Part shown: in pieces, positions 13,661-62,612 of the stretch
Layout of the letters: each line of letters begins with the position of its first letter
Position numbering within the stretch: the first letter of the stretch is position 1
From: Anthoceros angustus
Lineage: Eukaryota; Plantae; Anthocerotophyta
Reading direction: 5' to 3'
DNA: 64,000 bases
Assembly (NCBI GenBank): GCA_010909165.1
Contig: VJWM01000204.1
Location: 1 to 64,000, forward strand
The notes under the pieces: model-generated
What the model was told of the DNA's origin: nothing
Databases searched by the model: none
What the model saw: the letters and a program-made list of their open reading frames with translations, nothing else
Position numbers and translations under genes: made by a program

Positions 13661-13749
13661 TAAATCAGCACTATCTCTTTCTAAAATAGATGCCAATATA
13701 CCAATCGACACCTTAAAATTTACCAATTTACTAGTCCAATTCATTCTAG

Positions 13750-14493
13750 TTTCCTGGGTAAATTACCCAAAGGGCGAGACCTAAATCAAAAGATTTCCTC
13801 CGCACCATGAACTTAAAAATCTCACATTCTTGCAAATATCTTTTAATAATTCTATGATCTACGGTTAAGGTTTGTTCAATGAAGATTCATGTTCTCCTTT
13901 ACGGAGGGATGAGTTTATGCATGTATTCCTATGTGCTAACGAATTCATTCTCTACTTGTTCTCGGTTTCCCTAGAGGGCACGTAAATTACCCAAAGGCGA
14001 GACCTAAACCGAAAGATTTCCTCCGCACCATGAACTTAAAAATCTCACATTCTTGCAAATATCTTTTAATAATCGTGTGATCTACGGTTGTTAAGGTATG
14101 TTCCATGAAGATTCATGTTCTCCTTTATAGAGGGATGGGTGTATGCATGTGTATTCCGTGTTAACGAATTCATTCTTTCTACTTGTTCTCGTTTCCCTAG
14201 AGGGCACGTAAATTACCCAAAGGCGAGACCTAAACCGAAAGATTTCCTCCGCACCATGAACTTAAAAATCTCACATTCTTGCAAATATCTTTTAATAATC
14301 GTGTGATCTACGGTTGTTAAGGTTTGTTCAATGAAGATTCATGTTCTCCTTTATAGAGGGATGAGTTTATGCATGTATGTTCCGTGTGTTAATTCATTCT
14401 CTCTACTTGTTCTCAGTTTCCCTAGAGGGCACGTAAATTACCCAAAGGGACCTAAACCGAAAGAAATACTCCTATTTATCAATCTTTAAAATT
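13750..14493 (+). repeat. ~230-bp exon/intron modules x3 (ABA), unit 2
   Basis: Donors at ~13870, 14096, 14322. Confidence 0.9.
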
Positions 14494-15882: not shown

Positions 15883-16229
15883 TGTCAGCCTTGATGCATG
15901 GAGGAATCAAGCGTGGCCGCCTTGATGATAGATGCTAGCATGCGTGATCGGTGAGCAGATGGACCGCAGTTGAAGCGAGGAAGACTAGAACGATTAGGGT
16001 TGGAAGGTCAAGTTGAGGCAAATAGGCCAACCACGGTTAAATGGAAGTCGATTAGGCTAACCTAGATGACACTAACCTAGCTAGCTAGTAACGACTCGAA
16101 CCCCTCAAGGAGAAAAGGACACGTGCACGAGGAGCGGAGGCTACCACCCGCCTCCCAAGAATCAAGAGCCCTCTCGCATTCCATCCGCACTTCGTGTCTT
16201 GGTCTCCGCTCCGAGGAATGCCGATTACA
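15883..16229 (+). repeat. 5' LTR (347 bp)
   Basis: TGTCA...TTACA; shares an identical core AATAGGCCAACCACGGTTAAATGGAAGTCGATTAGGCTAACCTAGATGACACTAACCTAGCTAGCTAGTAAC with 23118-23464. Confidence 0.92.
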
Positions 16230-16232
16230 TCT

Positions 16233-16243
16233 TGGTATCGAGG
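16233..16243 (+). promoter_or_regulatory. Primer binding site, initiator tRNA-Met type
   Basis: TGGTATCGAG 3 nt after the LTR; canonical form is TGGTATCAGAGC. Confidence 0.8.
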
Positions 16244-16514
16244 ACGCGGTGCCGAATAATGGATCCGAATAGCTGAATGGATGACGGCGATTTGACCAAG
16301 AACACTGCCGAGTGGGGAAGTGACGGCTAGGGGCAAGGAATGTGGGGACTGTGGCGGGAAGTTGTTATTCACCGAGATGGATGGCGGTGGGGACAAGAGC
16401 ACGGACCTTTGAAGGTGCAGGAGCGTTTGCTCGAGGTCAAGTGAGTGCAAGGCGTTGGTGGTAGAGGATTGGGATCGAGTGGAAGAACGATGGGGAATTC
16501 ATTGCGATGCGCCG

Positions 16515-17962
16515 CAAGAAGGAAGGAAAAGCTGGAAAGAAAGGCAAGGAGGGACAAAAGAAGTGTTGGTTGGAGGAGGGCAGCGAGATTGTAATACCTT
16601 TCGGATTGATCAATGCGCCTACAATGATTCGAAGGTGTGTTTGCTTGAGCACAATCCTTGCTTTATGGCGCCTCTAGACGCAAGATAGAGTAAGAGGCCT
16701 CCAGGCCGGTCATTTCAGAATCATGTCGCAAGCGGAAGCCCAGAGCTCAAACTTGGCTTCTTGTGAGCACGTGTGCAAGACGATGTTCTTGAATAGTAGA
16801 GGAGCCGAACGGAGCGACAGAGCTTGGTGTCCGAAATGCCAATGAATGTGTCGTAGCGAAATTTGCCATTCCACATGCATGAGAAGCAATCGGTCGGTTT
16901 CCAGACCACCACGGTTTTAAGATCGGGTGTTTCGATCACCATTGATCAATACACGTGTGAGAGAGCAATTCTATTCGTGATGGTCAAACACGTTGAGCAC
17001 GCAAGAAGGAAGGAAAATGGAAAGAAAGGCAAGGAGGGACAAAAGAAGTGTTGGTTGGAGGAGGGCAGCGAGATTGTAATACCTTTGATTGATCAATGCG
17101 CCTACAATGATTCGAAGGTGTGTTTGCTTGAGCACAATCCTTGCTTTATGGCGTCTCTAGACGCAAGATAGAGTAAGAGGCCTCCAGGCCGGTCATTTCA
17201 GAATCATGTCGGCAAGCGGAAGCCCAGAGCTCAAACTTGGCTTCTTGTGAGCACGTGTGCAAGACGATGTTCTTGAATAGTAGAGGAGCCGAACGGAGCG
17301 ACAGAGCTTGGTGTCCGAAATGCCAATGAATGTGTCGTAGCGAAATTTGCCATTCCACATGCATGAGAAGCAATCGGTCGGTTTCCAGACCACCACGGTT
17401 TTAAGATCGGGTGTTTCGATCACCATTGATCAATACACGTGTGAGAGAGCAATTCTATTCGTGATGGTCAAACACGTTGAGCACGCAAGAAGGAAGGAAA
17501 AGCTGGAAAGAAAGGCAAGGAGGGACAAAAGAAGTGTTGGTTGGAGGAGGGCAGCGAGATTGTAATACCTTTCGATTGATCAATGCGCCTACAATGATTC
17601 GAAGGTGTGTTTGCTTGAGCACAATCCTTGCTTTATGGCGTCTCTAGACGCAAGATAGAGTAAGAGGCCTCCAGAGGCCGCAGTCGCTCAAAGAATCATG
17701 TCGCGGCGGAAGCCCATTGCTCAAACTTGGCTTCTTGTGAGCACCTGCAGACGACAGTTCTTGAATAGCTTGTAGAGGAGTAACGGAGCGACAGAGCTTG
17801 GTGTCCAAATGCCAATGAATGTGTCCGGTAGCCATTCCACATGCATGAGAAGCAATCGGTTTCACCAGACCAGCCACGAAGACTGGGTGTTTCGATCACC
17901 ATTGATCAATACACGTGAGAGAGCAATTATTCGTGATGGTCAAACACGTTGAGCACGCAAGA
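16515..17962 (+). repeat. Three ~485-bp direct repeats in the retrotransposon 5' leader
   Basis: GCAAGAAGGAAGGAAAA..GGGACAAAAGAAGTGTTGG starts at ~16515, ~17001 and ~17485; the third copy is more diverged. Confidence 0.92.
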
Positions 17963-18899
17963 ATGCGAGAACCGCCCATTGATCTTGGAGGATACGGAGT
18001 CAACATTTGTGACGCGAGTGGACCGTCATTGTGACTAGCCTTGCTACATGTGCGAGAGGCGAACCGGCGATTGTAGAGACACCGGCGATTTTGCGGTGAA
18101 GCGACATGGATAGCGACACTGCCTCCTCGAGGTGCAGAGAACAAGATCCTTGGCGATGTGAACCCGACTCGGATGTCGAGCCTCCAACCCTTCAGGTGTG
18201 AGGTCGAGAGGCGGCGAAGGCGCAAGAAAAGCCGCCGAGGAAGCCCAGTTGAGCCTCGAATGTAAAATGCTGCTACGCCGAGCGAGGTCAGCCGTGAGAA
18301 GGAATGTGGTAGAGGAAGGAGAGGTCGACTGCACTACTCAAGGAGTTGCGTAAATGGCACATGTGCTCAAAATATGAATGATGATGCGATGTGGATGCCA
18401 CGCGTGAGTTGGAGGTGCGAGCCGTGTGGAAGCCGAATTCCGATGATTCTTCAACGCACCTTGCGAACAACGAAGCACAAGAAAATTGATGGCAATTCTT
18501 GGCTCAGTCAAGGGGAGATGGCCCTACGAGAGAGATGTTGCAAGGAGGAATTCAACGCCCCGACTCGACAAGGCCTGCATTATGCCATATGTCAAGAGCG
18601 AGCCAATTCCAAATCGTGAAGCCGAGAGAAGAGTCGAGAGGGTAGCTAACGTGACGCGGAGAACTTGAAGGGCTTGTCAACATAACGACACGTAGCAACA
18701 CCCACCGCAAATCAAGAGACTCCAGAACTAAAACAGCGGATGATTCGGGTCTAGGTGAAGAAGAGCAAAGTGACCCACGCAGTCGACATGGCCGGAGGTC
18801 TAAGTTGCAAGACATGAACGGGCTCAAGCACGAGAGCTCAAGAACAAGGAAAGGGGAGGCGAGCATTCGATGAGGGTCCAGAGCCTACCAAGAACGATT

Positions 18900-19700
18900 T
18901 ATTTGAGGAAGAGAGCCAAGTTTGAGACATCGAGTCAAGATAGGAGTCCTACAAAGCCGCAAGAGTGGACTCAAGCTTTCGTATATTTTGAAGCGTGAAA
19001 ATGATCGAGAAAGAGAAAATCGATCTCACGCACATTATACTCATTTGGCGAGGGCGTGGTGGAGAATAGAAGAGAAGCCGCAAAGGGGAGAAGCCACCGT
19101 CCTCTCATGGGAAGTGATGAAAGTCAAGTCCTCCAAAATTTTCTGCCCAAGGACCACAAGGAACGTTGTTGGTCAAGATGGTATGCCCTCAAGCATACAG
19201 CTCCTTAGAGGAATTTCACTTGAGTTTCATGAAAACCATGCTCAAGTTACGACTTGGAGCAAGGTTAGCTAGATATTGTGATCTGTGCCAGTATAAGTTG
19301 GGAATTAAGAACGCGTTGCTCAGCTTGAAGAGGCCATGCCGCCATGGATATAGAAAATTATAGCGTGAAAACGTTAGCTCCAGGCCGCAATGGCAGCCAA
19401 TCCGTGCAAGGAGGGTGACCTTACCAAGCAAAGTATAGTGGCCAGCACATGGAAGCCAAGGTCGAGCGCACGAGCACCAACGCCAACCAACAAAGAAGAG
19501 TCAAGCCGATTGAATTCAAACAAAGAAGAAAGGGGAGAAGAAGGAATTCATGACGAAGGCCTATGCTTCATTTGCTCCCCGATCACATATCCGGACATCC
19601 ATATGGAGCCTTATACGGCAAGTGGTCGAGCAAGGAAGAGCACCATTGGCCTGCAGAGGCGTCAGCCAACGCATGGATAGATTGGCAAAATCGATCCGAA
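18900..19700 (+). mobile_element. gag: gag (frameshifted)
   Basis: ARAWWR..SWEVMK..F.P retrotransposon gag signature; GLCFIC zinc-knuckle start at ~19558. Confidence 0.7.
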
Positions 19701-19789
19701 TGTCATGACAGAAGAACAAAGGAGTAGAGATCGACTAGACAGAATGAGCAAGAAAGGTCCAAGTGTTATGAACACCTCAAGCACAGATC

Positions 19790-22700
19790 GCTGACAGTTG
19801 AGGGATTGTTGGGAGGCAAACGAGTCACTTTCTTAGTGGATGGAGGATCCTCACACAGCTACGTAAGAGCAGATGCGGCCAAAGACGCCCCAGAAGCCAT
19901 GTGGTATAGCACACAAACACAACAGCGAATGAAGTTAGCCAATGGCATGGTGGAGAAGGTAACCTTACACGAAATTCTGACCAGCATCAATATTTAGGGA
20001 TACACTGACCAGGTCAGACTTGAGGTTATCGATGCTCTAGCACATGAAGTGCTACTGGGGCAAGATTGGTTGTGGAAGGTTGACCCCAACATCTCGTGAA
20101 GCACGAAATAGCGTTGCAATGGCAAGGCAAAGAGTTGAAGTTGCAAGGAGCCTCCTTGCTAAGGACAAGTTGTTCTCAACAAGAAATGCTAGGAGGGCAC
20201 TCAAAAGAGGGAAGTTGAGTATGCTCGTTCTCACAATTGTTGCCAAGTAGAGCACGCATAAATTGGTCGGCCAGTGGGAGAGGTACCTTCGAGTTGCAAG
20301 AAGTCTTGGACGCCTTTGAAGATGTCTTCTCCGAGATGCGGCCCCAAGGAGAGACGTAGATCACGCTATAGACTGGTGGTGAGGCCCCAGAGGCCCCATA
20401 CAGCTTGCTCTGGAGAACATGCAGTCCAAGCAGAGATAGCTTGTTAAAGAAAGGGTTAGTAGAGCCATCTCAGATCACCATATCGCACTGCTCATCGTGA
20501 AACATAGAAACGGCAAAATCCGCATGTGCATTGACTATAGGGTCTGAATGCAACAACTCAAGAATCGCCCAAATGCCAAGAATAGAAGAGATACTTGACA
20601 ACCTAGTAGGCGCCAAGATTTTCAGCAAGGTTGATCTTCGTGGCTTTCACCGACACGATCCGGCTGGAGATGAGTATAAACCGCATTGACGAGAGGTACG
20701 GCCACTTGTTCTCGTGTTGCCTTCGGCATGACAAATGCACCAGCAACCTTCACAACGCTCATGACCAAGATATTGCGGCCCTACCTCGGAAATTTGTAGA
20801 AGTTTTCGTTGATGATATCTTAGTGTACTCCAAGGATGCCCGGAGCATAAGCAACACCTAGTATTAGTGCTCACCCGAGAGAACACCAATTGTATGCAAG
20901 GAAAGCAAAGTGCGAGTTCTTCCAAGAGGGTAAACTACCTTGGGTTCATCGCCTCGCGAGAGGTGGATCGTAAAGGTGCGTTGCATTGTGGAGTGGCCAG
21001 CCTAATGACTTGTCAGGTGCGCAATTCTTAGGCATGTGTGTACAAATGAGGAGTTTCATACCACAATATGCGAAGATAGAAGTCCGACAAACTTGACTTG
21101 CAAGGCATCCAAGTTTCCAATGTCAAGAGGCCAAAGTGGCATTTCAGATGAAGAAAGCGGTGACTAAGTCGCTATTCTTACCTTGGATATGGAGAAGCCA
21201 TTTGTGGTAAGAACCGACGCATCAAATCTAGCCCTAGGTGTCAGATCGCAACAAGATGGAAAGAGTGTAAGTTTCCTATCAAGGAAACTCCAAGGCGCAG
21301 AGTGCAATTACACAACTCACGATAAGGAGCTTGGGGTTTATGCACTAAAAGCTTGGAGACATTACCTCTATGGGAGTGAGTTTGTGGTATACATGCACCA
21401 TCGTAGCTTGGAGCATTTTTTCAAGCAACCTTTGTTGAACCCGATAAACAAGGTGGCGAGTACTGCGATTTCCACTTCACGATCTCCTACTCCCTGTAAG
21501 GCAAATTTAATGCCGATGCTCGAGCGTAAGAAGGTGTAGTGTCTTTGCTCAGTGGAGTCCGACATGTGGAAGGAGGTGAGGGAGTCGACCAAAGATGAGC
21601 ATTTGAGTAACATCCTACGCAAGTTGGAGGACGTGTCACTACCGGGCACCCTCGAGCTTGGGGGAGATACAAGACTCATCAAGGCATCTATATAGAAAGG
21701 GAAGCTTTGCATACCCGCATGTTGCTCAAGCTTGAAGCTAACCTTGCTCCATGATGCACATGATGCTCCTACAGCAGGGCACATGGGCATGGAACTTATC
21801 AGCGTTTGAAGGAACATGTGTGGTGGAAGGGCATGCGAGCAGAGTGTATAGAGTATGTAAGAACATGCTTACCTTGTCAGCAAACGAAGGTTGAAAGGAA
21901 GTCTCCAGTAGGACTCTTGATGCATGCAAGTCCTCCGAGAAGTGGCAAAGCATGTCATGCGATTTCGTGACTTGCCTTCCCAAGACTCAAGAGGAAATGA
22001 CGCCATCCGGTTTGCATGGACAGAGCTACTAAATTGGCTCACTTTATTCCGAAGGGTACTATAAAGGCCAAGTCATTAGCTCCCATTTTCCTCAAGGTGA
22101 GACCGCACGGGTGCCACAGGAGATAGTGAGCGATCGAGATTCCAAGTTCACATCGAGTTTTGACCGCCGCAAGAGCCTAGGCATCAAGCAATGTCGAGCT
22201 CGCTACCATGCACTGATGGAGCCGAGAAGTTGAACTGACCATGGAGGACTTGCTCGACCTTACGCCATGACAAGCAAGTGGGAAGAAGTGCGCCTTGGTG
22301 GAGTTTGCCTACAACTCGCAAAGCATTCAAAGAACGGATACTCACCCTTCAAAATGATTTATGGCAAGAACTTGCCCTCCGTGTCTGGGCTGTTGGGTGG
22401 CGAGCCAAAGTCGACGGAGCTAAGTGAAGAGATGCATGAAGCCCTTAACGATGCCATCCTGCGTATGCAAGTCGTGAATCAGCACAGAGCCACACACGCC
22501 AACAAGAAGAGACGCGATGAGCAGCACGAGGTAGGAGATCTGGTATGGCTGAGAGTCAAGCCAAATCGTTACTCCTGTCTACAAGAAGGTAAGGCAAAGT
22601 TGGCATACAGGTATGTGGGACCTTTTGCCGTGAGTAAGAAAATTTCTGCAGTTGCTTACCAGCTCGACTTGCCCACCAGGAAGATGTGCAGCTTTTGTCC

Positions 22701-23079
22701 TTGCTTAAGAAGTTTGTGGGAGAGCCTCCACAAGTTCCTAGACGATGGACCCACCGGCCAAGCATCGCCTAAGAAGAGCGCAACATCGGCCGATGGAGGG
22801 TACTGTTGCAACGAATTTCTACAACCTAGGAGAGAAGGACCCAACGCCAAGCTGAGCTGCCAGAAGAAGGAGGAGGGAGTGCGAACTTGCAGAAGACGCA
22901 AGTTCAAGCTGTGTGACCAGCTCATCTTCCAACCAGAGATTCTCGACGCCGAGCGAGTGTTGCAGGCAGACCGTGAAGGAATACTTGGTGAGGAGGCGAC
23001 CATCAAGAGGACCCGAGTTGGGAAACCAAGCCTTCATCGAAACTTTTCAACACCTCAAGAAACCCAAAGCGGAGAATGA
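19790..23079 (+). mobile_element. pol: pol: protease-RT-RNase H-integrase-chromodomain (frameshifted)
   Basis: FLVDGGSSHSYV; RMCIDYR; FVEVFVDDILVYS; FVVRTDASNLALG; NYTTHDKEL; WRHYLYG; HDAPTAGHMG; IVSDRDSKFTS; GYSPF; VGDLVWL..YVGPFAV..AYQLDLP; EILDA..VKEYLVR (chromodomain-like). Confidence 0.93.
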
Positions 23080-23101
23080 AGCGAGGCCCTCGATGCTCGC
23101 T

Positions 23102-23117
23102 AGAGGAAGGAAGAGGA
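23102..23117 (+). promoter_or_regulatory. Polypurine tract
   Basis: AGAGGAAGGAAGAGGA immediately before the 3' LTR TG. Confidence 0.88.
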
Positions 23118-23464
23118 TGTCACGTCATAAATGCGAGGGAGCGGACAAGCGAGACAAGCCCGACTTGATGATAGATGCTAGCTATGTGATCGGTAGCTAC
23201 CCAGAGCTAGCGTAGGAAGGCGCGACAAAGCGGACTAGGCGCGCATTAGGAAGCTGGTTGAGGCAAATAGGCCAACCACGGTTAAATGGAAGTCGATTAG
23301 GCTAACCTAGATGACACTAACCTAGCTAGCTAGTAACCCGACTCGAGAACCCGGTCAAGGAGAAAGGACACGTGCAGACGAGGCGGAGGCTACTTGCTCC
23401 CAAGAATCAAGACGGCTCTCGCATTCCATCTGCAGGCCTTGTGTCTTGGTGTGGAATGCCGACA
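23118..23464 (+). repeat. 3' LTR (347 bp)
   Basis: TGTCA...GACA; homologous to 15883-16229. Confidence 0.92.
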
Positions 23465-24050: not shown

Positions 24051-24955
24051 ATAGGACACCCTAGCCAATCTTAAGGACAAGCATGCAAGGGAAGGCGCCC
24101 TCCTCGGCCCGAGGCCTTGAAGATGCGGTAATCCCAGGATTAGGAAATGGGAGGCCTAGATGCGGGTTGAGAGGACCAAGCTCAAGCGTCGTGCGGATGC
24201 CTTGCGGCGCACTCTAAGGGCCGCTCTTGTGAGGTAAGCAATTGCATTCATGTGAGCACTTCCTCAACGGACAACCAAGCAAAACAAGTCTAATATGCAA
24301 ATACCAATTTGTAACACTAGGAGAGTAGCACACGTTGTGGTTTTCCTCCCACACTCTCCCACGAGAACAACACGCAAATTCGCACATGGCTCTCGGAGTG
24401 ATAGCTTTGGCCTCCTCACAACTCTCTTGCATTGCATATGTAGAGGACAAGGACAAGTTATGATGTGAGCTTGTCCTTTGTGAAAGGGTCTATATAGATA
24501 TACTAGGCCTTGGCATTGGCATATTCCTAAGATATCCTATTGGCATGCATGTGCCGAAATATCCAAAGAATACACCATAATATGCAAGGAATATGCTAAA
24601 GCATATAACTTGTGTTTATCCACTTAGTTATTGCTAACCGTGTTTAATTAACGAATCGATGCTTAATTAACATAACCACTTATATTAATTAATACTAACT
24701 TACTTAATGATAAGTCATTAGATTAATTAATGCTAGATATAAATGAATTTAACCACTTATATTAATTAATTAATACTAATAACTTACTTAATGATAAGTC
24801 ATTAGATTAATTAATGCTAGATATAAATGAATTTAACCACTTATTAATTAATTAATACTAATTACTTACTTAATGATAAGTCATTAGATTAATTAATGCT
24901 AGATATAAATGAATTTAACATAAATCAGCAGCACTATCTCTTTCTAAAATAGATG

Positions 24956-25042
24956 CCAATATACCAATCGACACACGGCTGAAAATTTACCAATTTACTA
25001 GTTGCCAATATGAAGCCCGGTAGTTTCTCATGGGGTATAAAT
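24956..25042 (+). promoter_or_regulatory. Candidate Pol II core promoter of the kinase gene: four CCAAT motifs plus TATAAAT (example; TATA also at 29504, 33999, 39643, 44354, 50284, 55130, 60599)
   Basis: CCAAT at 24956, 24964, 24990, 25005; TATAAAT at 25036-25042, about 110 bp before the first splice donor. Confidence 0.6.
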
Positions 25043-26663
25043 GGGCGAGACTTAAAATCAAAATGCCTCCGGACTCGAACTTGAAATCTTGTTATCCATT
25101 CTTCTTGCATGTAACTTTTCATAATTCTATGATCTACATTGTTAAGGTTTGTTCAATGAAGATTGATGTTCTCCTTTACGGAGGGATGAGTTTATGCATG
25201 TATATTCCTATGTGTGCTAACAATTCATTCTCTACTTGTTCTCTGAGTTTCCCTAGAGGGCACGTAAATTACCCAAAGGCGAGACCTAAACCGAAAGATT
25301 TCCTCCGCCATGAACTTAAAAATCTCACATTCTTGCAAATATCTTTTAATAATCGTGTGATCTACGGTTGTTAAGGTATGTTCCATGAAGATTCATGTTC
25401 TCCTTTATAGAGGGATGGGTGTATGCATGTGTATTCCGCGTGTTAACGAATTCATTCTACTTGTTCCCTCTGAGTTTCCCTAGAGGGCACGTAAATTACC
25501 CAAAGGCGAGACCTAAACCGAAAGATTTCCTCCGCACCATGAACTTAAAAATCTCACATTCTTGCAAATATCTTTTAATAATCGTGTGATCTCTAGTTGT
25601 TAAGGTTTGTTCAATGAAGATTCATGTTCTCCTTTACGGAGGGATGAGTTTATGCATGTATATTCCTATGTGTGCTAGCAATTCATTCTCTCTACTTGTT
25701 CTCTCAGGTTTCCCTAGAGGGCACGTACCCAAAGGGCGAGACCTAAACCGAAAGATTCCTCCGCACCATGAACTTAAAAATCTCACATTCTTGCAAATAT
25801 CTTTTAATAATCGTGTGATCTACTGTTGTTAAGGTATGTTCCATGAAGATTCATGTTCTCCTTTATAGAGGGATGGGTGTATGCATGTGTATTCCTGTTA
25901 ATTCATTCTCTCTACTTGTTCCCTACAGTTTCCCTAGAGGGCACGTAAATTACCCAAAGGCGAGACCTAAACCGAAAGATTTCCTCCGCACCATGAACTT
26001 AAAAATCTCACATTCTTGCAAATATCTTTTAATAATCGTGTGATCTCTGTTGTTAAGGTTTGTTCAATGAAGATTCATGTTCTCCTTTATAGAGGGATGA
26101 GTTTATGCATGTATGTTCCTGTGTGTGCTAATTCATTCTCTCTACTTGTTCAGGTTTCCCTAGAGGGCACGTAAATTACCCAAAGGCGAGACCTAAACCG
26201 AAAGATTTCCTCCATGAACTTAAAAATCTATTCTTGCAAATATCTTTTAATAATTATGATCTATTGTTAAGGTATGTTCCATGAAGATTCATGTTCTATA
26301 GAGGGATGGGTGTATGCATGTGTATTCCGTGTTAACGAATTCATTCTTTCTACTTGTTCTCGGGTTTCTAGAGGGCACGTAAATTACCCAAAGGCGAGAC
26401 CTAAACCGAAAGATTTCCTCCGCACCATGAACTTAAAAATCTCACATTCTTGCAAATATCTTTTAATAATTGTGTGATCTCGATTGTTAAGGTTTGTTCA
26501 ATGAAGATTCATGTTCTCCTTTATAGAGGATGAGTTTATGCATGTATGTTCCTGTGTGCTAACGAATTCATTCTCTCTACTTGTTCCTGGAGTTTCCCTA
26601 GAATTACCCAAAGGGCGAGACCTAAACCGAAAGAAATACTCCTATTTATCAATCTTTAAAATT
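25020..26663 (+). repeat. ~230-bp modules x7 (ABABABA), unit 3
   Basis: Seven TTAAGGT(T/A)TGTTC donors spaced ~215-230 bp apart. Confidence 0.9.
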
Positions 26664-27460
26664 ATGGAGTCCACAATGAAAATTGAAGTGAGAATGTTTG
26701 AAGAAAGATACATATGTGGAAAATGTATCGGTGAGGTTTTTCCAAAGTCTATGAATGCTATGACAAATATACGGAAAGATATTTGCCTGCAAAATTATGA
26801 AAAATCTAAAGACATAAATGATGCAATATGTAGAGAGATCAACACTCTTGATCTCTTCCAAAATATTCTCATATTATTAACACAAAAGTGTTCATGAGGA
26901 TATTGAACATATTTATATTGTGATGGAGCTATGTACCAATGGTACACTAAAGGATGAACTAAAAAGGGGAGCTTATTGTGAAGAGGATGCAAAAATACTT
27001 ATGTTTAACCTAATGGAGGCAATCAATTTTGCCACAGGCATAATGTTATGCATCGCGATTTGAAACCGCTAATATACTATTACTTGCCTCAAGTCATACT
27101 AGCGAGACTTTGGTTTTTCCTTCCATGTCTCCAAAACGAACATGAATTATTATGCGAGTGGAACCCCATGTTACATGGCTCGAGGTATTGGAGTCGGACG
27201 ATGTAAACATAAGCTATACTTCAAAAGCCGATATTTGGAGCGCAGGAGTCATTTTGTATGAAGTTTTAACCGAAATCGTCCTTATATAGGATATGAGTTC
27301 GAACAAAAGAAGAATGGATAACTCAATTGGACCTAGATGAGTGGCCCAACATGTCACAGTGAAAGATCTACTACACTCAATGTTACATTTAGAACAAGAG
27401 TGTAGACGGATCTGTACAGTTCTAAACCATTCTTGGTTTTGCTCGCTATCTTATATATGA
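26664..27460 (+). CDS. Ser/Thr kinase copy 3
   Basis: Same ATGGAGTCCACAATG start and TCTTATATATGA end; kinase motifs present across frames. Confidence 0.85.
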
Positions 27461-27959: not shown

Positions 27960-28600
27960 ACGGAGAGAACTCCCCTGCACAATGGCAATGGACACCGTTG
28001 CTGAAGAAGCCATCACACAAGAAAGGCGCTGGTAGGCTTTAGCACAGCCTTGATGAACTGGAGAAATCCTTGCCCATGGCCCCGTGAGTCTCGATGGCAA
28101 GGGGATGAAGGCGTGGCCCTTCTTGCATGGGCGAGTACTTGTGAACGCTCGTTGTCGCGCATCTCTCCGCCACCCAACCGGAGGGTTGATGATGGCGTGC
28201 TTGCAGCATGTCCGCAAGGTGCATTACACATCCACACTACCGTCCCCCTCGGTGTCGAGAACATGGCGTCGTGGACGGCGTGATGCGAGCAATGCCCGCC
28301 AATTTGGAGGCGAGGGCTACGGCGTCTAAAGAGAGCAGCCAAAGGTTGGACCAAACCCGGTGAACCTCATCGCGGTAGAAAAGAAGCCGGTCACTCGAAA
28401 TACCTTGATGCAAGGTCGGGCTAGAAGCCATGAACTGCTCCTTCCCGAGCAAGAGCGGAGGCGAGCTCGAGTGGTCAAGGAATGGAGGAATCGAGGAGCA
28501 AAGCCCAGCGTGCCCATACAAGTTTCTTCTCATGGAGGGAGGCCAAAGCCCCACGCAGCCCGTCCATGAGAACGAGGACGAATGCGGCATGACCGCCCTA
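27960..28600 (-). mobile_element. CRE-like remnant, unit 3
   Basis: PLAIETHGAMGKDF and SWLLARPCIKVFRV present. Confidence 0.75.
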
Positions 28601-36082: not shown

Positions 36083-36411
36083 ATGGAGTCCACAATGAAA
36101 ATTGAAGTGAGAATGTTTGAAGAAAGATACATATGTGGAAAATGTATCGAAGGAGGTTTTTCCAAAGTCTATGAATGCTATGACAAATATACGGAAAGAT
36201 ATTTGCCTGCAAAATTATGAAAAATCTAAAGACATAAATGATGCAATATGTAGAGAGATCAACACTCTTCGATCTCTTCCAAAATATTCTCATATTATTA
36301 ACACAAAAGTGTTCATGAGGATATTGAACATATTTATATTGTGATGGAGCTATGTACCAATGGTACACTAAAGGATGAACTAAAAAAGGGGAGCTTATTG
36401 TGAAGAGGATG
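36083..36411 (+). pseudogene. 5' part of kinase, truncated, jumping back into a 230-bp module
   Basis: Kinase sequence runs to GAAGAGGATG then continues as module sequence GGTGTATGCATG. Confidence 0.75.
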
Positions 36412-36963
36412 GGTGTATGCATGTGTGTATTGTAGTGTTAACGAATTCATTCTTTCTACTTGTTCTCAGTTTCCCTAGAGGGCAAATTACCCAAAGGCGA
36501 GACCTAAACCGAAAGATTTCCTCCGCACATGAACTTAAAAATCTCAAAAATATCTTTTAATAATCGTGTGATCTCATTGATTTGTTCAATGAAGATTCAT
36601 GTTCTCCTCCTTTATAGAGGATGAGTTTATGTATATTCCTATGTGTTGAATTCATTCTCTCTACTTGTTCCTGGAGTTTTAGAGGCACGTAAATTACCCA
36701 AAGGCGGACCTAAACCGAAAGATTTTGAATGAACTTAAAAATCTCACATTCTTGCAAATATCTTTTAATAATCGTGTGATCTACTTGTTAAGGTTTGTTC
36801 AATGAATTCATGTTCTCCTTTATAGAGGGATGAGTTTATGCATGTATGTTTGGTGCTGAATTCATTCTCTCTACTTGTTCTCTGTTTCCTAGAGGGCACG
36901 TAAATTACCCAAAGGCGGACCTAAACCGAAAGAAATACTCCTATTTATCAATCTTTTAAAATT

Positions 36964-37552
36964 ATGGAGTCCACAATGAAAATTGAGTGAGAATGTTTGA
37001 AGAAAGATACATATGTGGAAAATGTATCGGTGAAGGAGGTTTTTCCAAAGTCTATGAAGCTATGACAAATATATAAAGATATTTGCCTGCAAAATTATGA
37101 AAAATCTAAAGACATAAATGATGCAATATGTAGAGAGATCAACACTCTTCGATCTCTTCCAAAATATTCTCATATTATTAACACAAAAGTGTTCATGAGG
37201 ATATTGAACATATTTATATTGTGATGGAGCTATGTACCAATGGTACACTAAAGGATGAACTAAAAAGGGGAGCTTATTGTGAAGAGGATGCAAAATACTT
37301 ATGTTTAACCTAATCAATATTTTTAATATAATGATTTTTATTTTAACTTTATTCATAAATGACTAAGCCCAAAAGCTTGATATTTGATATGTTTTGAGAA
37401 GAATGGATAACTCAATTGGACCTAGATGAGTGGCCCAACATGTCTGCAGTGAAAGATCTACTACACTCAATGTTACATTTAGAACAAGAGTGTAGACCGG
37501 ATGCGCACAAGTTCTAAACCATTCTTGGTTTTGCTCGCTATCTTATATATGA
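36964..37552 (+). pseudogene. Kinase copy missing the HRD-DFG-APE segment
   Basis: At ~37313-37397 the catalytic-loop region is replaced by 3'-region-like AT-rich and scrambled sequence; could be an assembly artefact. Confidence 0.65.
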
Positions 37553-50269: not shown

Positions 50270-52232
50270 AGTTTCTCATGGGGTATAAATGGGCGAGACT
50301 TAAAATCGCTCGGACTCGAACTTCAAATCTTGTTATCCATTCTTCTTGCATGTAACTTTTCATAATTCTATGATCTACTGATTGTTAAGGTTTGTTCAAT
50401 GAAGATTGATGTTCTCCTTCAGAGGGATGAGTTTATGCATGTATATTCCTATGTGTGCTACGAATTCATTCTCTCTACTTGTTCTCTGAGTTTCCCTAGA
50501 GGGCACGTAATTACCCAAAGGCGAGACCTAAACCGAAAGATTTCCTCCCATGAACTTAAAAATCTCACATTCTTGCAAATATCTTTTAATAATCGTGTGA
50601 TCTACGGTTGTTAAGGTATGTTCCATGAAGATTCATGTTCTCCTTTATAGAGGGATGGGTGTATGCATGTGTATTCAGTGTTAATTCATTCTTTCTACTT
50701 GTTCCCTCGGGTTTCCTAGAGGGCACGAATTACCCAAAGGCGAGACCTAAACCGAAAGATTTCCTCGCACCATGAACTTAAAAATCTCACATTCTTGCAA
50801 ATATCTTTTAATAATCGTGTGATCTACTTGTTAAGGTTTGTTCAATGAAGATTCATGTTCTCCTTTATAGAGGGATGAGTTTATGCATGTATATTCCTAT
50901 GTGTGCTAACGATTCATTCTCTCTACTTGTTCCTATGAGGTTTCCCTAGAGGGCACGGTACCCAAAGGCGAGACCTAAACCGAAGATTTCCTCCGCACCA
51001 TGAACTTAAAAATCTCACATTCTTGCAAATATCTTTTAATAATCGTGATCTACTTGTTAAGGTTTGTTCATGAAGATTCATGTTCTCCTTTATAGAGGAT
51101 GAGTTTATGCATGTATACGTGTGGAAGAATTCATTCTCTCTACTTGTTCCTAGTTTCTAGAACGTAAATTACCCAAAGGGGACCTAAACCGAAGAAATAC
51201 TCCTATTTATCAATCTTTTAAAATTATGGAGTCCACAATGAAAATTGAAGTGAGAATGTTTGAAGAAAGATACATATGTGGAAAATGTATCGGTGAAGGA
51301 GGTTTTTCCAAAGTCTATGAATGCTATGACAAATATACGGAAAGATATTTGCCTGCAAAATTATGATCTACTATTGTTAAGGTTTGTTCAATGAAGATTG
51401 ATGTTCTCCTTACGGAGGGATGAGTTTATGCATGTATATTATTATGTGCTTCGAATTCATTCTCTCTACTTGTTCTCTGAGTTTCCCTAGAGGGCACGTA
51501 AATTACCCAAAGGCGAGACCTAAACCGAAAGATTTCCTCCGCCATGAACTTAAAAATCTCACATTCTTGCAAATATCTTTTAATAATCGTGTGATCTAAG
51601 TTAAGGTATGTTCCATGAAGATTCATGTTCTCCTTTATAGAGGGATGGGTGTATGCATGTGTATTCGGCGTGTTGAATTCATTCTTTCTACTTGTTCCCC
51701 TGGGTTTCCTAGAGGGCACGTAAATTACCCAAAGGCGAGACCTAAACCGAAAGATTTCCTCCCCACCATGAACTTAAAAATCTCACATTCTTGCAAATAT
51801 CTTTTAATAATCGTGATCTACTGATTGTTAAGGTTTGTTCAATGAAGATTCATGTTCTCCTTTATAGAGGGATGAGTTTATGCATGTATGTTCCTATGTG
51901 CTAACGAATTCATTCTCTCTACTTGTTCTCTGAGTTTCCCTAGAGGCACGTAAATTACCCAAAGGCGAGACCTAAACCAAAGATTTCCTCCGCACCATGA
52001 ACTTAAAAATCTCACATTCTTGCAAATATCTTTTAATAATCGTGTGATCTACTATTGTTGAGGTATGTTCCATGAAGATTCATGTTCTCCTTTATAGAGG
52101 ATGAGTTTATGCATGTATGTGTGCTAACGATTCATTCTTTCTACTTGTTCCTGGGTTTCCCTAGAGGGCACGTAAATTACCCAAAGGGACCTAAACCAAA
52201 GAAATACTCCTATTTATCAATCTTTTAAAATT
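50270..52232 (+). repeat. ~230-bp modules 4+4, split by a kinase 5' fragment, unit 8
   Basis: Four donors before 51226 and four after 51367. Confidence 0.85.
51226..51366 (+). pseudogene. 5' fragment of kinase joined back to the first 230-bp module
   Basis: ...GCAAAATTATGA then TCTACTATTGTTAAGGTTTG with the first-module variant AAGATTGATG. Confidence 0.75.
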
Positions 52233-57092: not shown

Positions 57093-57707
57093 AAGATAGT
57101 AATTTTATTATATAAGAACTTTTATTTGTATTATATATTTTTAATATAATGATTTTTTATTTTAACTTTATTCATAATTTCATTAAACCACTCTTCAGTG
57201 CCTCTTTCTTGTGAGAAAGTCTTCAAGCCATGCAAGCGGCAGTCATGAAATTGATGTAGTGAAGCTGAGATTGGAGTATATCGCTATGTATTTAGCCAGT
57301 GAGTGCTGTTTTGGTCATTGTCATAGCATGGCATAATAGCATCGGGACAATTTCTTCTTCTATAGCTACGCATATTATAGTTACTAAATCGCATGTTAGA
57401 ATCTTGACGGGTTCGCAAACCCCGACTACTCTCGCTCAACGTGCTTGTGGGACGATCACACCAAGGGTGTGCGAATGTTTTGAATCATGAGCGAGCAAGT
57501 GAAACGTGGCCGAGGCGGAGTGTGAAGATGGCGGCGCGAGAAGGAAAATTGGCATTTAGGGTGGAAACGGCTATTGTTGAAGTCCCACCTTGCGGCCCAG
57601 AGAGAACTCCTAGCACAGGGCAATGGACACCTGCGAAGAAGCCATCACACAAGAAAAGGCGGGACCTAAACCGAAAGAAATACTCCTATTTATCAATCTT
57701 TAAAATT

Positions 57708-60584: not shown

Positions 60585-61794
60585 AGTTTCTCATGGGGTA
60601 TAAATGGGCGAGACTTAAAATCAGCTAGCACTCGGACTCGAACAAATCTTGTTATCCATTCTTCTTGCATGTAACTTTTCATAATTCTATGATCTACGGT
60701 TGTTAAGGTTTGTTCAATGAAGATTGATGTTCTCCTTTACGGAGGGATGAGTTTATGCATGTATATTCCTATGTGTGCTAACGAATTCATTCTCTCTACT
60801 TGTTCTCTGAGGTTTCCCTAGAGGGCACGTAAATTACCCAAAAGACCTAAACCGAAAGATTTCCTCCGCCATGAACTTAAAAATCTCACATTCTTGCAAA
60901 TATCTTTTAATAATCGTGTGATCTACTTGTTAAGGTATGTTCCATGAAGATTCATGTTCTCCTTTATAGAGGGATGGGTGTATGCATGTGTATTCCTAGC
61001 GTGTTAACGAATTCATTCTTTCTACTTGTTCCCTCTGAGGTTTCCCTAGAGGGCACGTAAATTACCCAAAGGGCGAGACCTAAACCGAAAGATTTCCTCC
61101 GCACCATGAACTTAAAAATCTCACATTCTTGCAAATATCTTTTAATAATCGTGTGATCTCTGTTGTTAAGGTTTGTTCAATGAAGATTCATGTTCTCCTT
61201 TATAGAGGGATGAGTTTATGCATGTATGTTCCGTGTGCTAACGAATTCATTCTCTCTACTTGTTCTACAGTTTCCCTAGAGGGCACGTAAATTACCCAAA
61301 GGGCGAGACCTAAACCGAAGATTCCTCCCATGAACTTAAAAATCTCACATTCTTGCAAATATCTTTTAATAATCGTGTGATCTACGGTTGTTAAGGTATG
61401 TTCCATGAAGATTCATGTTCTCCTTTATAGAGGGATGGTGTATGCATGTGTATTCGCGTGTTAATTCATTCTTTCTACTTGTTCCCTGGGTTTCCCTAGA
61501 GGGCACGTAAATTACCCAAAGGCGAGACCTAAACCGAAAGATTTCCTCCGCACCATGAACTTAAAAATCTCACATTCTTGCAAATATCTTTTAATAATCG
61601 TGTGATCTACTATTGTTAAGGTTTGTTCAATGAAGATTCATGTTCTCCTTTATAGAGGGATGAGTTTATGCATGTATGTTCTGTGTGCTAACGATTCTCT
61701 CTACTTGTTCCCTGTTTCCTAGAGGGCACGTAAATTACCCAAAGGCGGGACCTAAACCGAAAGAAATACTCCTATTTATCAATCTTTTAAAATT
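60585..61794 (+). repeat. ~230-bp modules x5, unit 11
   Basis: ABABA pattern. Confidence 0.9.
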
Positions 61795-62612
61795 ATGGAG
61801 TCCACAATGAAAATTGAAGTGAGAATGTTTGAAGAAAGATACATATGTGGAAAATGTATCGGTGAAGGAGGTTTTTCCAAAGTCTATGAATGCTATGACA
61901 AATATATGGGAAAGATATTTGCCTGCAAAATTATGAAAAAATCTAAAGACATAAATGATGCAATATGTAGAGAGATCAACACTCTTCGATCTCTTCCAAA
62001 ATATTCTCATATTATTAACACAAAAGTGTTCATGAGGATATTGAACATATTTATATTGTGATGGAGCTATGTACCAATGGTACACTAAAGGATGAACTAA
62101 AAAAGGGGAGCTTATTGTGAAGAGGATGCAAAAATACTTATGTTTAACCTAATGGAGGCAATCAATTTTGCCACAGCATAATGTTATGCATCGCGATTTG
62201 AAACCGGCTAATATACTATTACTTAGCCGTCTCAAAGTCATACTAGGACTTTGGTTTATGCTTCCATGTCTCCAAAACGAACATGAATTATTGTATGCAG
62301 GAGGCTGGGGAACCCCATGTTACATGGCTCGGAGGTATTGGAGTCAAGACGATGTAAACATAAGCTATACTTCAAAAGCCGATATTTGGAGCCGAGTCAT
62401 TTTGTATGAAGTTTTAACCGAAATCGTCCTTATATAGGATATGAGTTCGACGAAAAGAAGAATGGATAACTCAATTGGACCTAGATGAGTGGCCCAACAT
62501 GTCACACAGTGAAAGATCTACTACACTCAATGTTACATTTAGAACAAGAGTGTAGACCGGATCTTGACAAGTTCTAAACCATTCTTGGTTTTGCTCGCTA
62601 TCTTATATATGA
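61795..62612 (+). CDS. Ser/Thr kinase copy (unit 11)
   Basis: N-lobe open: MESTMKIEVRMFEERYICGKCIGEGGFSKVYECYDKYMGKIFACKIMKKSKDINDAICREINTLRSLPKYSHIINTK; then HNVMHRDLKPANILLL. Confidence 0.9.

Follow-up and report, generated by a model that had tools for sequence, protein, structure and literature searches.

A repeated, probable exon+intron module in the predicted 5' leader of an arrayed CDPK-derived kinase gene in the hornwort Anthoceros angustus

Organization of the kinase array and its coding sequence

The window analysed here, which is the whole 64-kb stretch of Anthoceros angustus DNA, contains a head-to-tail array of kinase genes on the + strand that starts at ~10.4 kb and runs to the end of the window (10445–64000). 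The units of the array are ~4.5–5.5 kb long and include 13 kinase starts, 3 of which are truncated or internally deleted. A complete unit is composed of an 84-bp AT-rich tandem, a TATA-like box, the repeat modules, an intronless kinase, a non-LTR endonuclease remnant on the opposite strand to the kinase, and an AT-rich element that is high-copy. In the unit displayed above, TRF detects three copies of the 84-bp tandem (24673–24919, unstranded) within a dispersed, high-copy element that precedes the promoter and over which the depth of short-read contigs from a DNA run reaches thousands. The TATA-like box (TATAAAT, 25036–25042, + strand) has a putative promoter role, and the spacing between it and the first donor site is 102–114 nt in all 8 complete units.

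The gene copies differ in their number of modules, as the sequence-only reading had stated, and with it in the number of predicted introns and uORFs. Counted by kinase copy, the modules number 1, 3, 7, 7, 9, (2–3, partial), 6, 9, 4, 4, 5, 0 and 5, i.e. from 0 to 9; in most complete units the predicted introns number 5, 7 or 9. The earlier counts agree with these, but they omitted the first group, which has a single module, and the partial group located near 36400–36960.

The array is interrupted in unit 2 by a Ty3/Gypsy-like insertion of ~7.5 kb (15909–23463), which is probably a Ty3/Gypsy element. It contains an ORF with a Tf2-type SH3 (integrase) at 22267–23079 and a 484-bp tandem at 16513–17963, and a ~200-nt direct repeat lies near both of its ends (16012–16203 and 23257–23450). 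The 5' end of the same unit (13690–13790) combines promoter-type with module-type sequence and lacks the TATA box; it could be either a real intermediate or a polishing chimera. Downstream of the displayed kinase, the remnant of a restriction-like endonuclease from a CRE/R2-type non-LTR element (28000–28450, − strand), recognized by eye in translation, is convergent with the kinase and has equivalents in each unit; Pfam returned no match for the ORFs overlapping it, tested in other copies. Rearranged units are found at 36390–36420, 37310–37400, 51355–51385 and 57650–57670, where the kinase is joined back into a module or is internally deleted with a short insert, or where a unit has lost the promoter and all modules. 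In the partial units the kinase is fused to a module, or a transposon remnant to the last exon, at short microhomologies, and the junctions into modules and the last exon have 5–8 nt of microhomology.

The coding sequence (26664–27460, + strand) specifies a kinase catalytic domain that, after correction for read errors, would be ~280 aa long. Pfam recognizes Pkinase on the copy at 52.7k, calcium-dependent protein kinase 3 is the best PDB match, with other CDPKs next, and the Gly loop, Lys, HRD, DFG and APE motifs of a CAMK-group catalytic domain can be made out in anchor blocks or in one or more copies. In the consensus of the 10 full copies a stop follows right after the catalytic domain, with no junction domain and no set of four EF-hands, therefore the kinase is CDPK-derived and not a CDPK.

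None of the 21 anchor blocks across ten copies (724 nt) contains a stop in the kinase frame before the terminal one, and the frame breaks fall between the anchors, at homopolymers or CG/CHG sites. Wherever the kinase frame fixes the right length, the frame-keeping length is present in at least one copy, and a few sites, e.g. in the activation loop, are ambiguous in length. Among the wrong readings at the hot spots, 71 fall short of the frame-keeping length and 1 exceeds it. Furthermore, the short-read DNA contigs correct the window at 26732, 26991 and 27406–27417, and at the last of these positions they match 1 of the 10 assembled copies and keep the frame. The apparent frameshifts are probably long-read errors, and the kinase is probably intact.

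No close relatives of this kinase have been found. The best single-domain matches are at most 46% identical, a word search with its N- and C-terminal pieces, which covers proteins of similar length to the piece, returned no relatives, and the full scan and the Atlas gave only distant kinases. In viral contigs there was one weak kinase match of 37 aa and no sign of a viral origin. An open frame in a kinase so far from its relatives suggests that it was under selection until recently. Contigs from the DNA run and from an RNA-like run are ~88–90% alike to the kinase at 26642–27085 and 27196–27358, which indicates diverged paralogs elsewhere; the paralog piece from the RNA-like run differs mostly by G-to-A changes and is preceded by unrelated sequence. 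In addition, a 16-nt perfect inverted match connects the first exon and the kinase coding sequence (60651–60666 and 62455–62470, also 25091 and 27307). It is present in 8 of 8 first exons and in the 10 full kinases, is reached in 2 of 2000 shuffles, and could be due to chance, a fold-back relic or pairing between leader and coding sequence.

The leader module: anatomy, predicted intron types and probable derivation

Between the TATA-like box and the kinase lie the modules, which the sequence-only reading had taken for an exon+intron cassette in the 5' leader of the kinase. The motifs, the TATA spacing, the partition of ATGs, the confinement of divergence to the intron and the chimeric make-up of the internal exon all bear this out, and the modules are probably exon+intron units of the 5' leader, the introns being predicted from sequence features. 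Each is composed of a GT-AG-type intron of ~105 nt, the length proposed before, and a non-coding exon. The exon and module sizes given earlier (~125 and 230 nt) are too small because the assembled copies are shortened by deletions; once these are allowed for, the exon is 132 nt and the module ~235–239 nt (~237 nt). The donors read AAG/GTTTGT (type A) and AAG/GTATGT (type B) in ~60 copies, i.e. AG/GT with a G at +5, and in the displayed unit they are found, in the form originally described, at seven sites (25147, 25376, 25605, 25834, 26058, 26272 and 26492). The branch-like motif noted at the outset, GCTAAC in type A and GTTAAC in type B, is likewise readable, followed by a pyrimidine tract without AG, and the motif and the C/T tract fall within the 15–50 nt before the acceptor that are expected for a U2 intron. 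The intron is 43% T and contains 5 ATGs, and the exon has 1. Stops occur in all three frames of the exon with either acceptor candidate.

In the displayed unit, the first-exon region (25043–25146), with a predicted start at ~25065–25075, is without the module uATG and contains two different short uORFs. Predicted intron 1 (25147–25246) is of type A1, seen at the first position only, and internal exon 2 (25247–25375) has its uORF at 25310. Then follow intron 2 of type B (25376–25473), exon 3 (25474–25604, uORF at 25539), intron 3 of type A (25605–25707), exon 4 (25708–25833, uORF at 25768), intron 4 of type B (25834–25927), exon 5 (25928–26057, uORF at 25993), intron 5 of type A (26058–26153), exon 6 (26154–26271, with a garbled uORF at 26214), intron 6 of type B (26272–26363) and exon 7 (26364–26491, uORF at 26427), all predicted on the + strand, the acceptors of introns 3 and 5 reading CAG/GT. 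The last predicted intron, 7, is of type A (26492–26591), and the untranslated part of the last exon (26592–26663, + strand) has no uATG; in the consensus its first ~55 nt are nearly identical to the internal exon, after which the two diverge. Two metagenome matches to the module (L001:3844–3865 and L002:4585–4606) were discarded, as they represent the same bacterial gene and a chance 22-nt match with no flanking similarity.

The least certain part of the module is the acceptor. A clean YAG/GT is present in 5 of 63 copies, 12 read YAG/T, 17 read GAG and 28 have no AG; the five include the three sites that had been called clear (10664, ~25707 and ~45239), but also ~26153 and ~35780. The stretch, which is flanked by CTACTTGTT and TTTCCCTAG, is an error hot spot with 43 different readings in the 63 copies, and across the array the readings of CAG and CTG amount to roughly one third of the number expected. 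Readings such as CTGTAGG, CTGCGG and CTACAG are probably best explained by a true CTGCAG/G acceptor. A second candidate, CCCTAG/AG, lies 10 nt downstream, and its TAG is present in 63 of 63 scored copies, as the search pattern required. By way of this TAG the prediction of an intron survives, but that of the exact junction does not, and the junction read that had been proposed for RNA searches may be wrong if the acceptor is the TAG 10 nt further on.

The introns are position-specific in type, the private variant A1 coming first, after which A and B alternate. All 10 diagnostic substitutions between A and B are in the intron and 0 in the 132-nt exon (binomial p 2.9e-4), and together with an indel of ~3 nt they span the intron from position +3 to ~8 nt before the acceptor. 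The intron thus diverges faster than the flanking exon (10 vs 0 substitutions), a contrast that is weaker, with p ~0.04, under a model of one conversion tract. The sole A/B difference in the exon is an indel reading just before the uATG, mainly in exon 2. Near-total invariance of the exon beside 10% divergence of the intron exceeds the prediction of neutral turnover and could reflect selection on the leader.

The first and last exons are degenerate or partial copies of the module in which the corresponding position has no uATG. Homology between the first exon and the internal exon begins at the GGGCGAGAC motif, which immediately follows the TATA box, and extends as far as the donor (0 of 1000 shuffles); from the common ~22-mer onward the first exon is a roughly 70% diverged copy of the module exon. 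It has a ~22-nt semi-repeat in common with the last exon, at the overlap. The internal exon is a chimera of last and first exon joined at the ~22-mer, and therefore the product expected of unequal crossing-over, to which the position of the joint also points as the origin of the repeat. Upstream of the TATA box there is weak similarity in register (61 of 1000 shuffles), a borderline homology that may mean that the repeat is older than a simple crossover model has it. An origin of the intron as an old duplicate of the exon was rejected (355 of 1000 shuffles).

On this basis the ancestor would have been a kinase-only, CDPK-derived gene with one leader intron, i.e. a TATA box, exon 1, the intron and exon 2 with the ATG, whose two exons had the ~22-nt semi-repeat in common. 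Unequal crossing-over at this semi-repeat would have duplicated the intron and created the chimeric internal exon from the 5' end of the last exon and most of the first. Divergence of the resulting ~237-nt module could then have given the two intron types, and repeated unequal exchange could have lengthened and shortened runs of the AB pair, leaving mostly 5, 7 or 9 introns; these numbers and the alternation of A and B are expected if the pair was the expanding entity. The whole gene would have been amplified head-to-tail together with its flanking transposon debris.

Putative methylation, expression and upstream ORFs

The copies of the array are ~87–92% identical and gap-rich, and their differences are concentrated. 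Positions no more than a few bases from CG/CHG account for 95% of the disagreement between copies in the promoter/first exon, 74% in the internal exon and 84% in the kinase, where columns near CG/CHG make up 39%, 46% and 30%, respectively. We infer base-calling errors at methylated cytosines and homopolymers, a pattern that implies CG/CHG methylation over the promoter, gene and coding sequence, and that would be compatible with early nanopore data assembled as has been described for Anthoceros (PMC8075897). CG and CHG methylation with little CHH has been reported for a hornwort, in which non-expressed, CG/CHG-methylated genes are a described class (PMC10952607).

Expression can be assessed in the RNA-like run, which is from the same sample as the DNA run and, like it, kept as contigs; it represents one sample, its RNA nature is a guess, and contigs drop rare molecules. 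A contig of 1788 nt with a depth of 608 reads like a canonical CDPK, which fits this run being RNA. Its contigs contain neither modules nor this kinase, only pieces of paralogs that are less than 90% alike, and they include no spliced joint with GT..AG ends, the pieces having been searched singly. This absence is a weak indication that the array is not expressed, and the array appears to be both methylated and silent in the sampled tissue. A more general implication is that genes of methylated arrays may be intact even if an unpolished long-read assembly makes them look 'broken'.

The uORF previously noticed in the internal exons is readily found: MNLKISHSCKYLLIIV and its stop, 16 codons, are legible in 37 of 53 copies, and position −3 of the uATG is a purine in 45 of 53. 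Neither the first nor the last exon has the uATG at the homologous position, nor does one paralogous contig of the DNA run, and a single ATG within 132 AT-rich bases does not exceed chance expectation. If the array is transcribed, each copy would have a spliced leader of 0.7–1.2 kb whose 6–10 short uORFs would be expected to reduce translation strongly, in a kinase that is without its calcium switch. An unspliced leader would hold 31–55 ATGs, hence damping is predicted for spliced and unspliced leaders alike.

Taken together, we favour an account, with a probability of roughly 0.6, in which the leader-intron repeats were made by crossing-over, the array is CG/CHG-methylated and silent in the sequenced tissue, and the variation in module number is a by-product of array turnover and not a tuned dial. 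Even as a by-product, the locus would illustrate how a leader intron is multiplied by unequal crossing-over into what appears to be a plain satellite, and it provides a set of nearly identical natural genes in which the leader introns and uORFs range from 0 to 9. Should the array prove to be expressed, this set would allow a direct test of how expression depends on the number of introns and uORFs.

An unlikely but consequential alternative is that an intact, calcium-independent kinase array is expressed at some stage, such as the sporophyte or the sex organs, and that the number of spliced uORF exons, possibly through exon skipping, acts as a translational rheostat of kinase output, the exon being kept invariant by selection or RNA-templated conversion. 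This would be a new way of tuning a kinase without its calcium switch. It would suit the open kinase frame with its readable catalytic motifs, the exon that is invariant while the introns diverge, and the purine at −3 of most uATGs; a kinase without EF-hands would also be controllable only through its amount, and in a hornwort 9.3% of the genes in the methylated, silent class are expressed in sporophytes (PMC10952607). However, the RNA-like run offers no support for it, the uATG stands at chance level and is missing from the homologous positions just named, and the same array includes units with 0 modules, without a TATA box or with truncated kinases. The sequence-only reading had proposed that repeat number could set kinase translation, and this is not supported, given an RNA-like run without modules, the implied methylation and the lack of uATG conservation. 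Its suggestions of exon skipping and of back-splicing into circles likewise found no RNA evidence in that run.

Other readings of the module and comparison with known systems

It is also improbable that the module is a transposon end (MULE/MITE-like) or another non-genic satellite, with coincidental and unused splice-like motifs. Such motifs are common when loosely defined, as the loose set is met in 49% of dinucleotide shuffles. The strict textbook set of donor, branch, tract and YAG is rare (2 of 5000 dinucleotide shuffles, by criteria that are textbook but were chosen after the sequence had been seen), and in the real module it is found on the kinase strand only and is absent from the reverse strand. 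The module copies count here as one event and not as 60, because all descend from one ancestor. The motifs of the first-exon region and the module exon may resemble MULE/MITE-type terminal repeats, degenerate edge copies are typical of any satellite, and the unit is full of transposon debris. Against this, the boundaries of divergence coincide with the intron, the TATA spacing is constant, the ATGs partition to the intron, and no second, inverted copy flanks the kinase. Pack-MULE/MITE ends in particular were rejected, since the module matches on the + strand only and no unit has a long inverted repeat.

A further and quite unlikely view is that unpolished long-read assembly of a repeat created both the differences in module number and the partial units. 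The modest identity and many gaps of the copies, the chimeric look of the 5' end of unit 2 and the fact that no short-read contig spans the array speak for it. It is opposed by the regular, position-specific alternation of the intron types, by a unit length of <6 kb, which should be below typical long-read length, and by junction microhomology that is typical of real deletions.

It is very unlikely that the repeated intron is kept for a small hairpin RNA, as in repeated snoRNA/miRNA host arrays. The intron does contain a hairpin of ~60 nt, with a z of −3.2 for a chosen 66-nt piece of type A, and four A/B changes keep its pairs. Over the whole intron, however, z is just −0.7 to −1.2, and it is −1.4 for the B hairpin; the changes are one-sided G-C/G-U or A-U/G-U swaps and not true covariation, and the intron is the very part that diverges. 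Rfam gave no match. The hairpin, which is found in every intron (e.g. 60735–60800) and has weak statistics, includes the branch motif, engages a portion of the pyrimidine tract in base pairs and might hinder splicing.

That the modules are coding repeats extending the N-terminus of the kinase, as a 114-aa frame through one module as assembled (25030–25374) might suggest, is most improbable, since after splicing at either acceptor no frame of the exon is free of stops, stop-free runs on the + strand of rebuilt modules reach at most 53 aa, the 25030 frame depends on short readings of the kind that make up nearly all wrong readings at the kinase hot spots (71 vs 1), and a short-read DNA contig adds a G at 25277 that closes it.

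The reading of a crossover-made, silent array of leader introns can be set beside several known systems. In Anthoceros agrestis, the Cluster P2 genes are short, non-expressed, CG+CHG-methylated and protein-coding, and often overlap transposon sequence (PMC10952607), and the kinase genes of the array resemble them in being short and, apparently, silent and CG+CHG-methylated, among transposon sequence. Unlike in that class, the methylation of the kinase array is deduced from read errors.

PEPC kinase (PPCK) is a minimal CDPK-related kinase, and the array kinase is similar to it in design, as a kinase-only protein of ~280 aa whose best solved relative is calcium-dependent protein kinase 3. It differs from CDPKs and PPCK in that it combines the lack of EF-hands and junction domain with an intronless coding sequence and no close relative (≤46% identical).

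Plant genes with leader introns and uORF leaders have a TATA box, a short first exon, a U-rich GT-AG intron and the ATG in the next exon. The kinase genes are comparable in their TATA box, short first exon, U-rich intron of ~105 nt and leader uORFs, but here intron and exon are repeated up to 9 times and their number varies between neighbouring gene copies.

Tandem genomic duplication is listed as a mechanism of intron gain (PMC3296678), and there, as here, duplication within a gene raises its intron number. In that mechanism the duplicated segment becomes the intron, whereas here an existing intron is copied with its flanking exon. The parts and the mechanism of an untranslated exon+intron repeat are already known; narrow word searches of the literature for repeated untranslated exon+intron units found no precedent, a result that does not in itself prove novelty.

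Finally, variable-number exon+intron repeats are present in LPA (kringle IV-2) and NBPF, and repeated non-coding exon/intron units in the SNORD115/116 host. These have in common with the kinase leader that they are head-to-tail cassettes with identical splice sites, the copy number of which changes through unequal crossing-over. They differ in that they code for protein or host snoRNAs, whereas the modules described here are untranslated, bear uORFs and match nothing in Rfam, and are cassettes that sit within a second-level array of genes in a plant.
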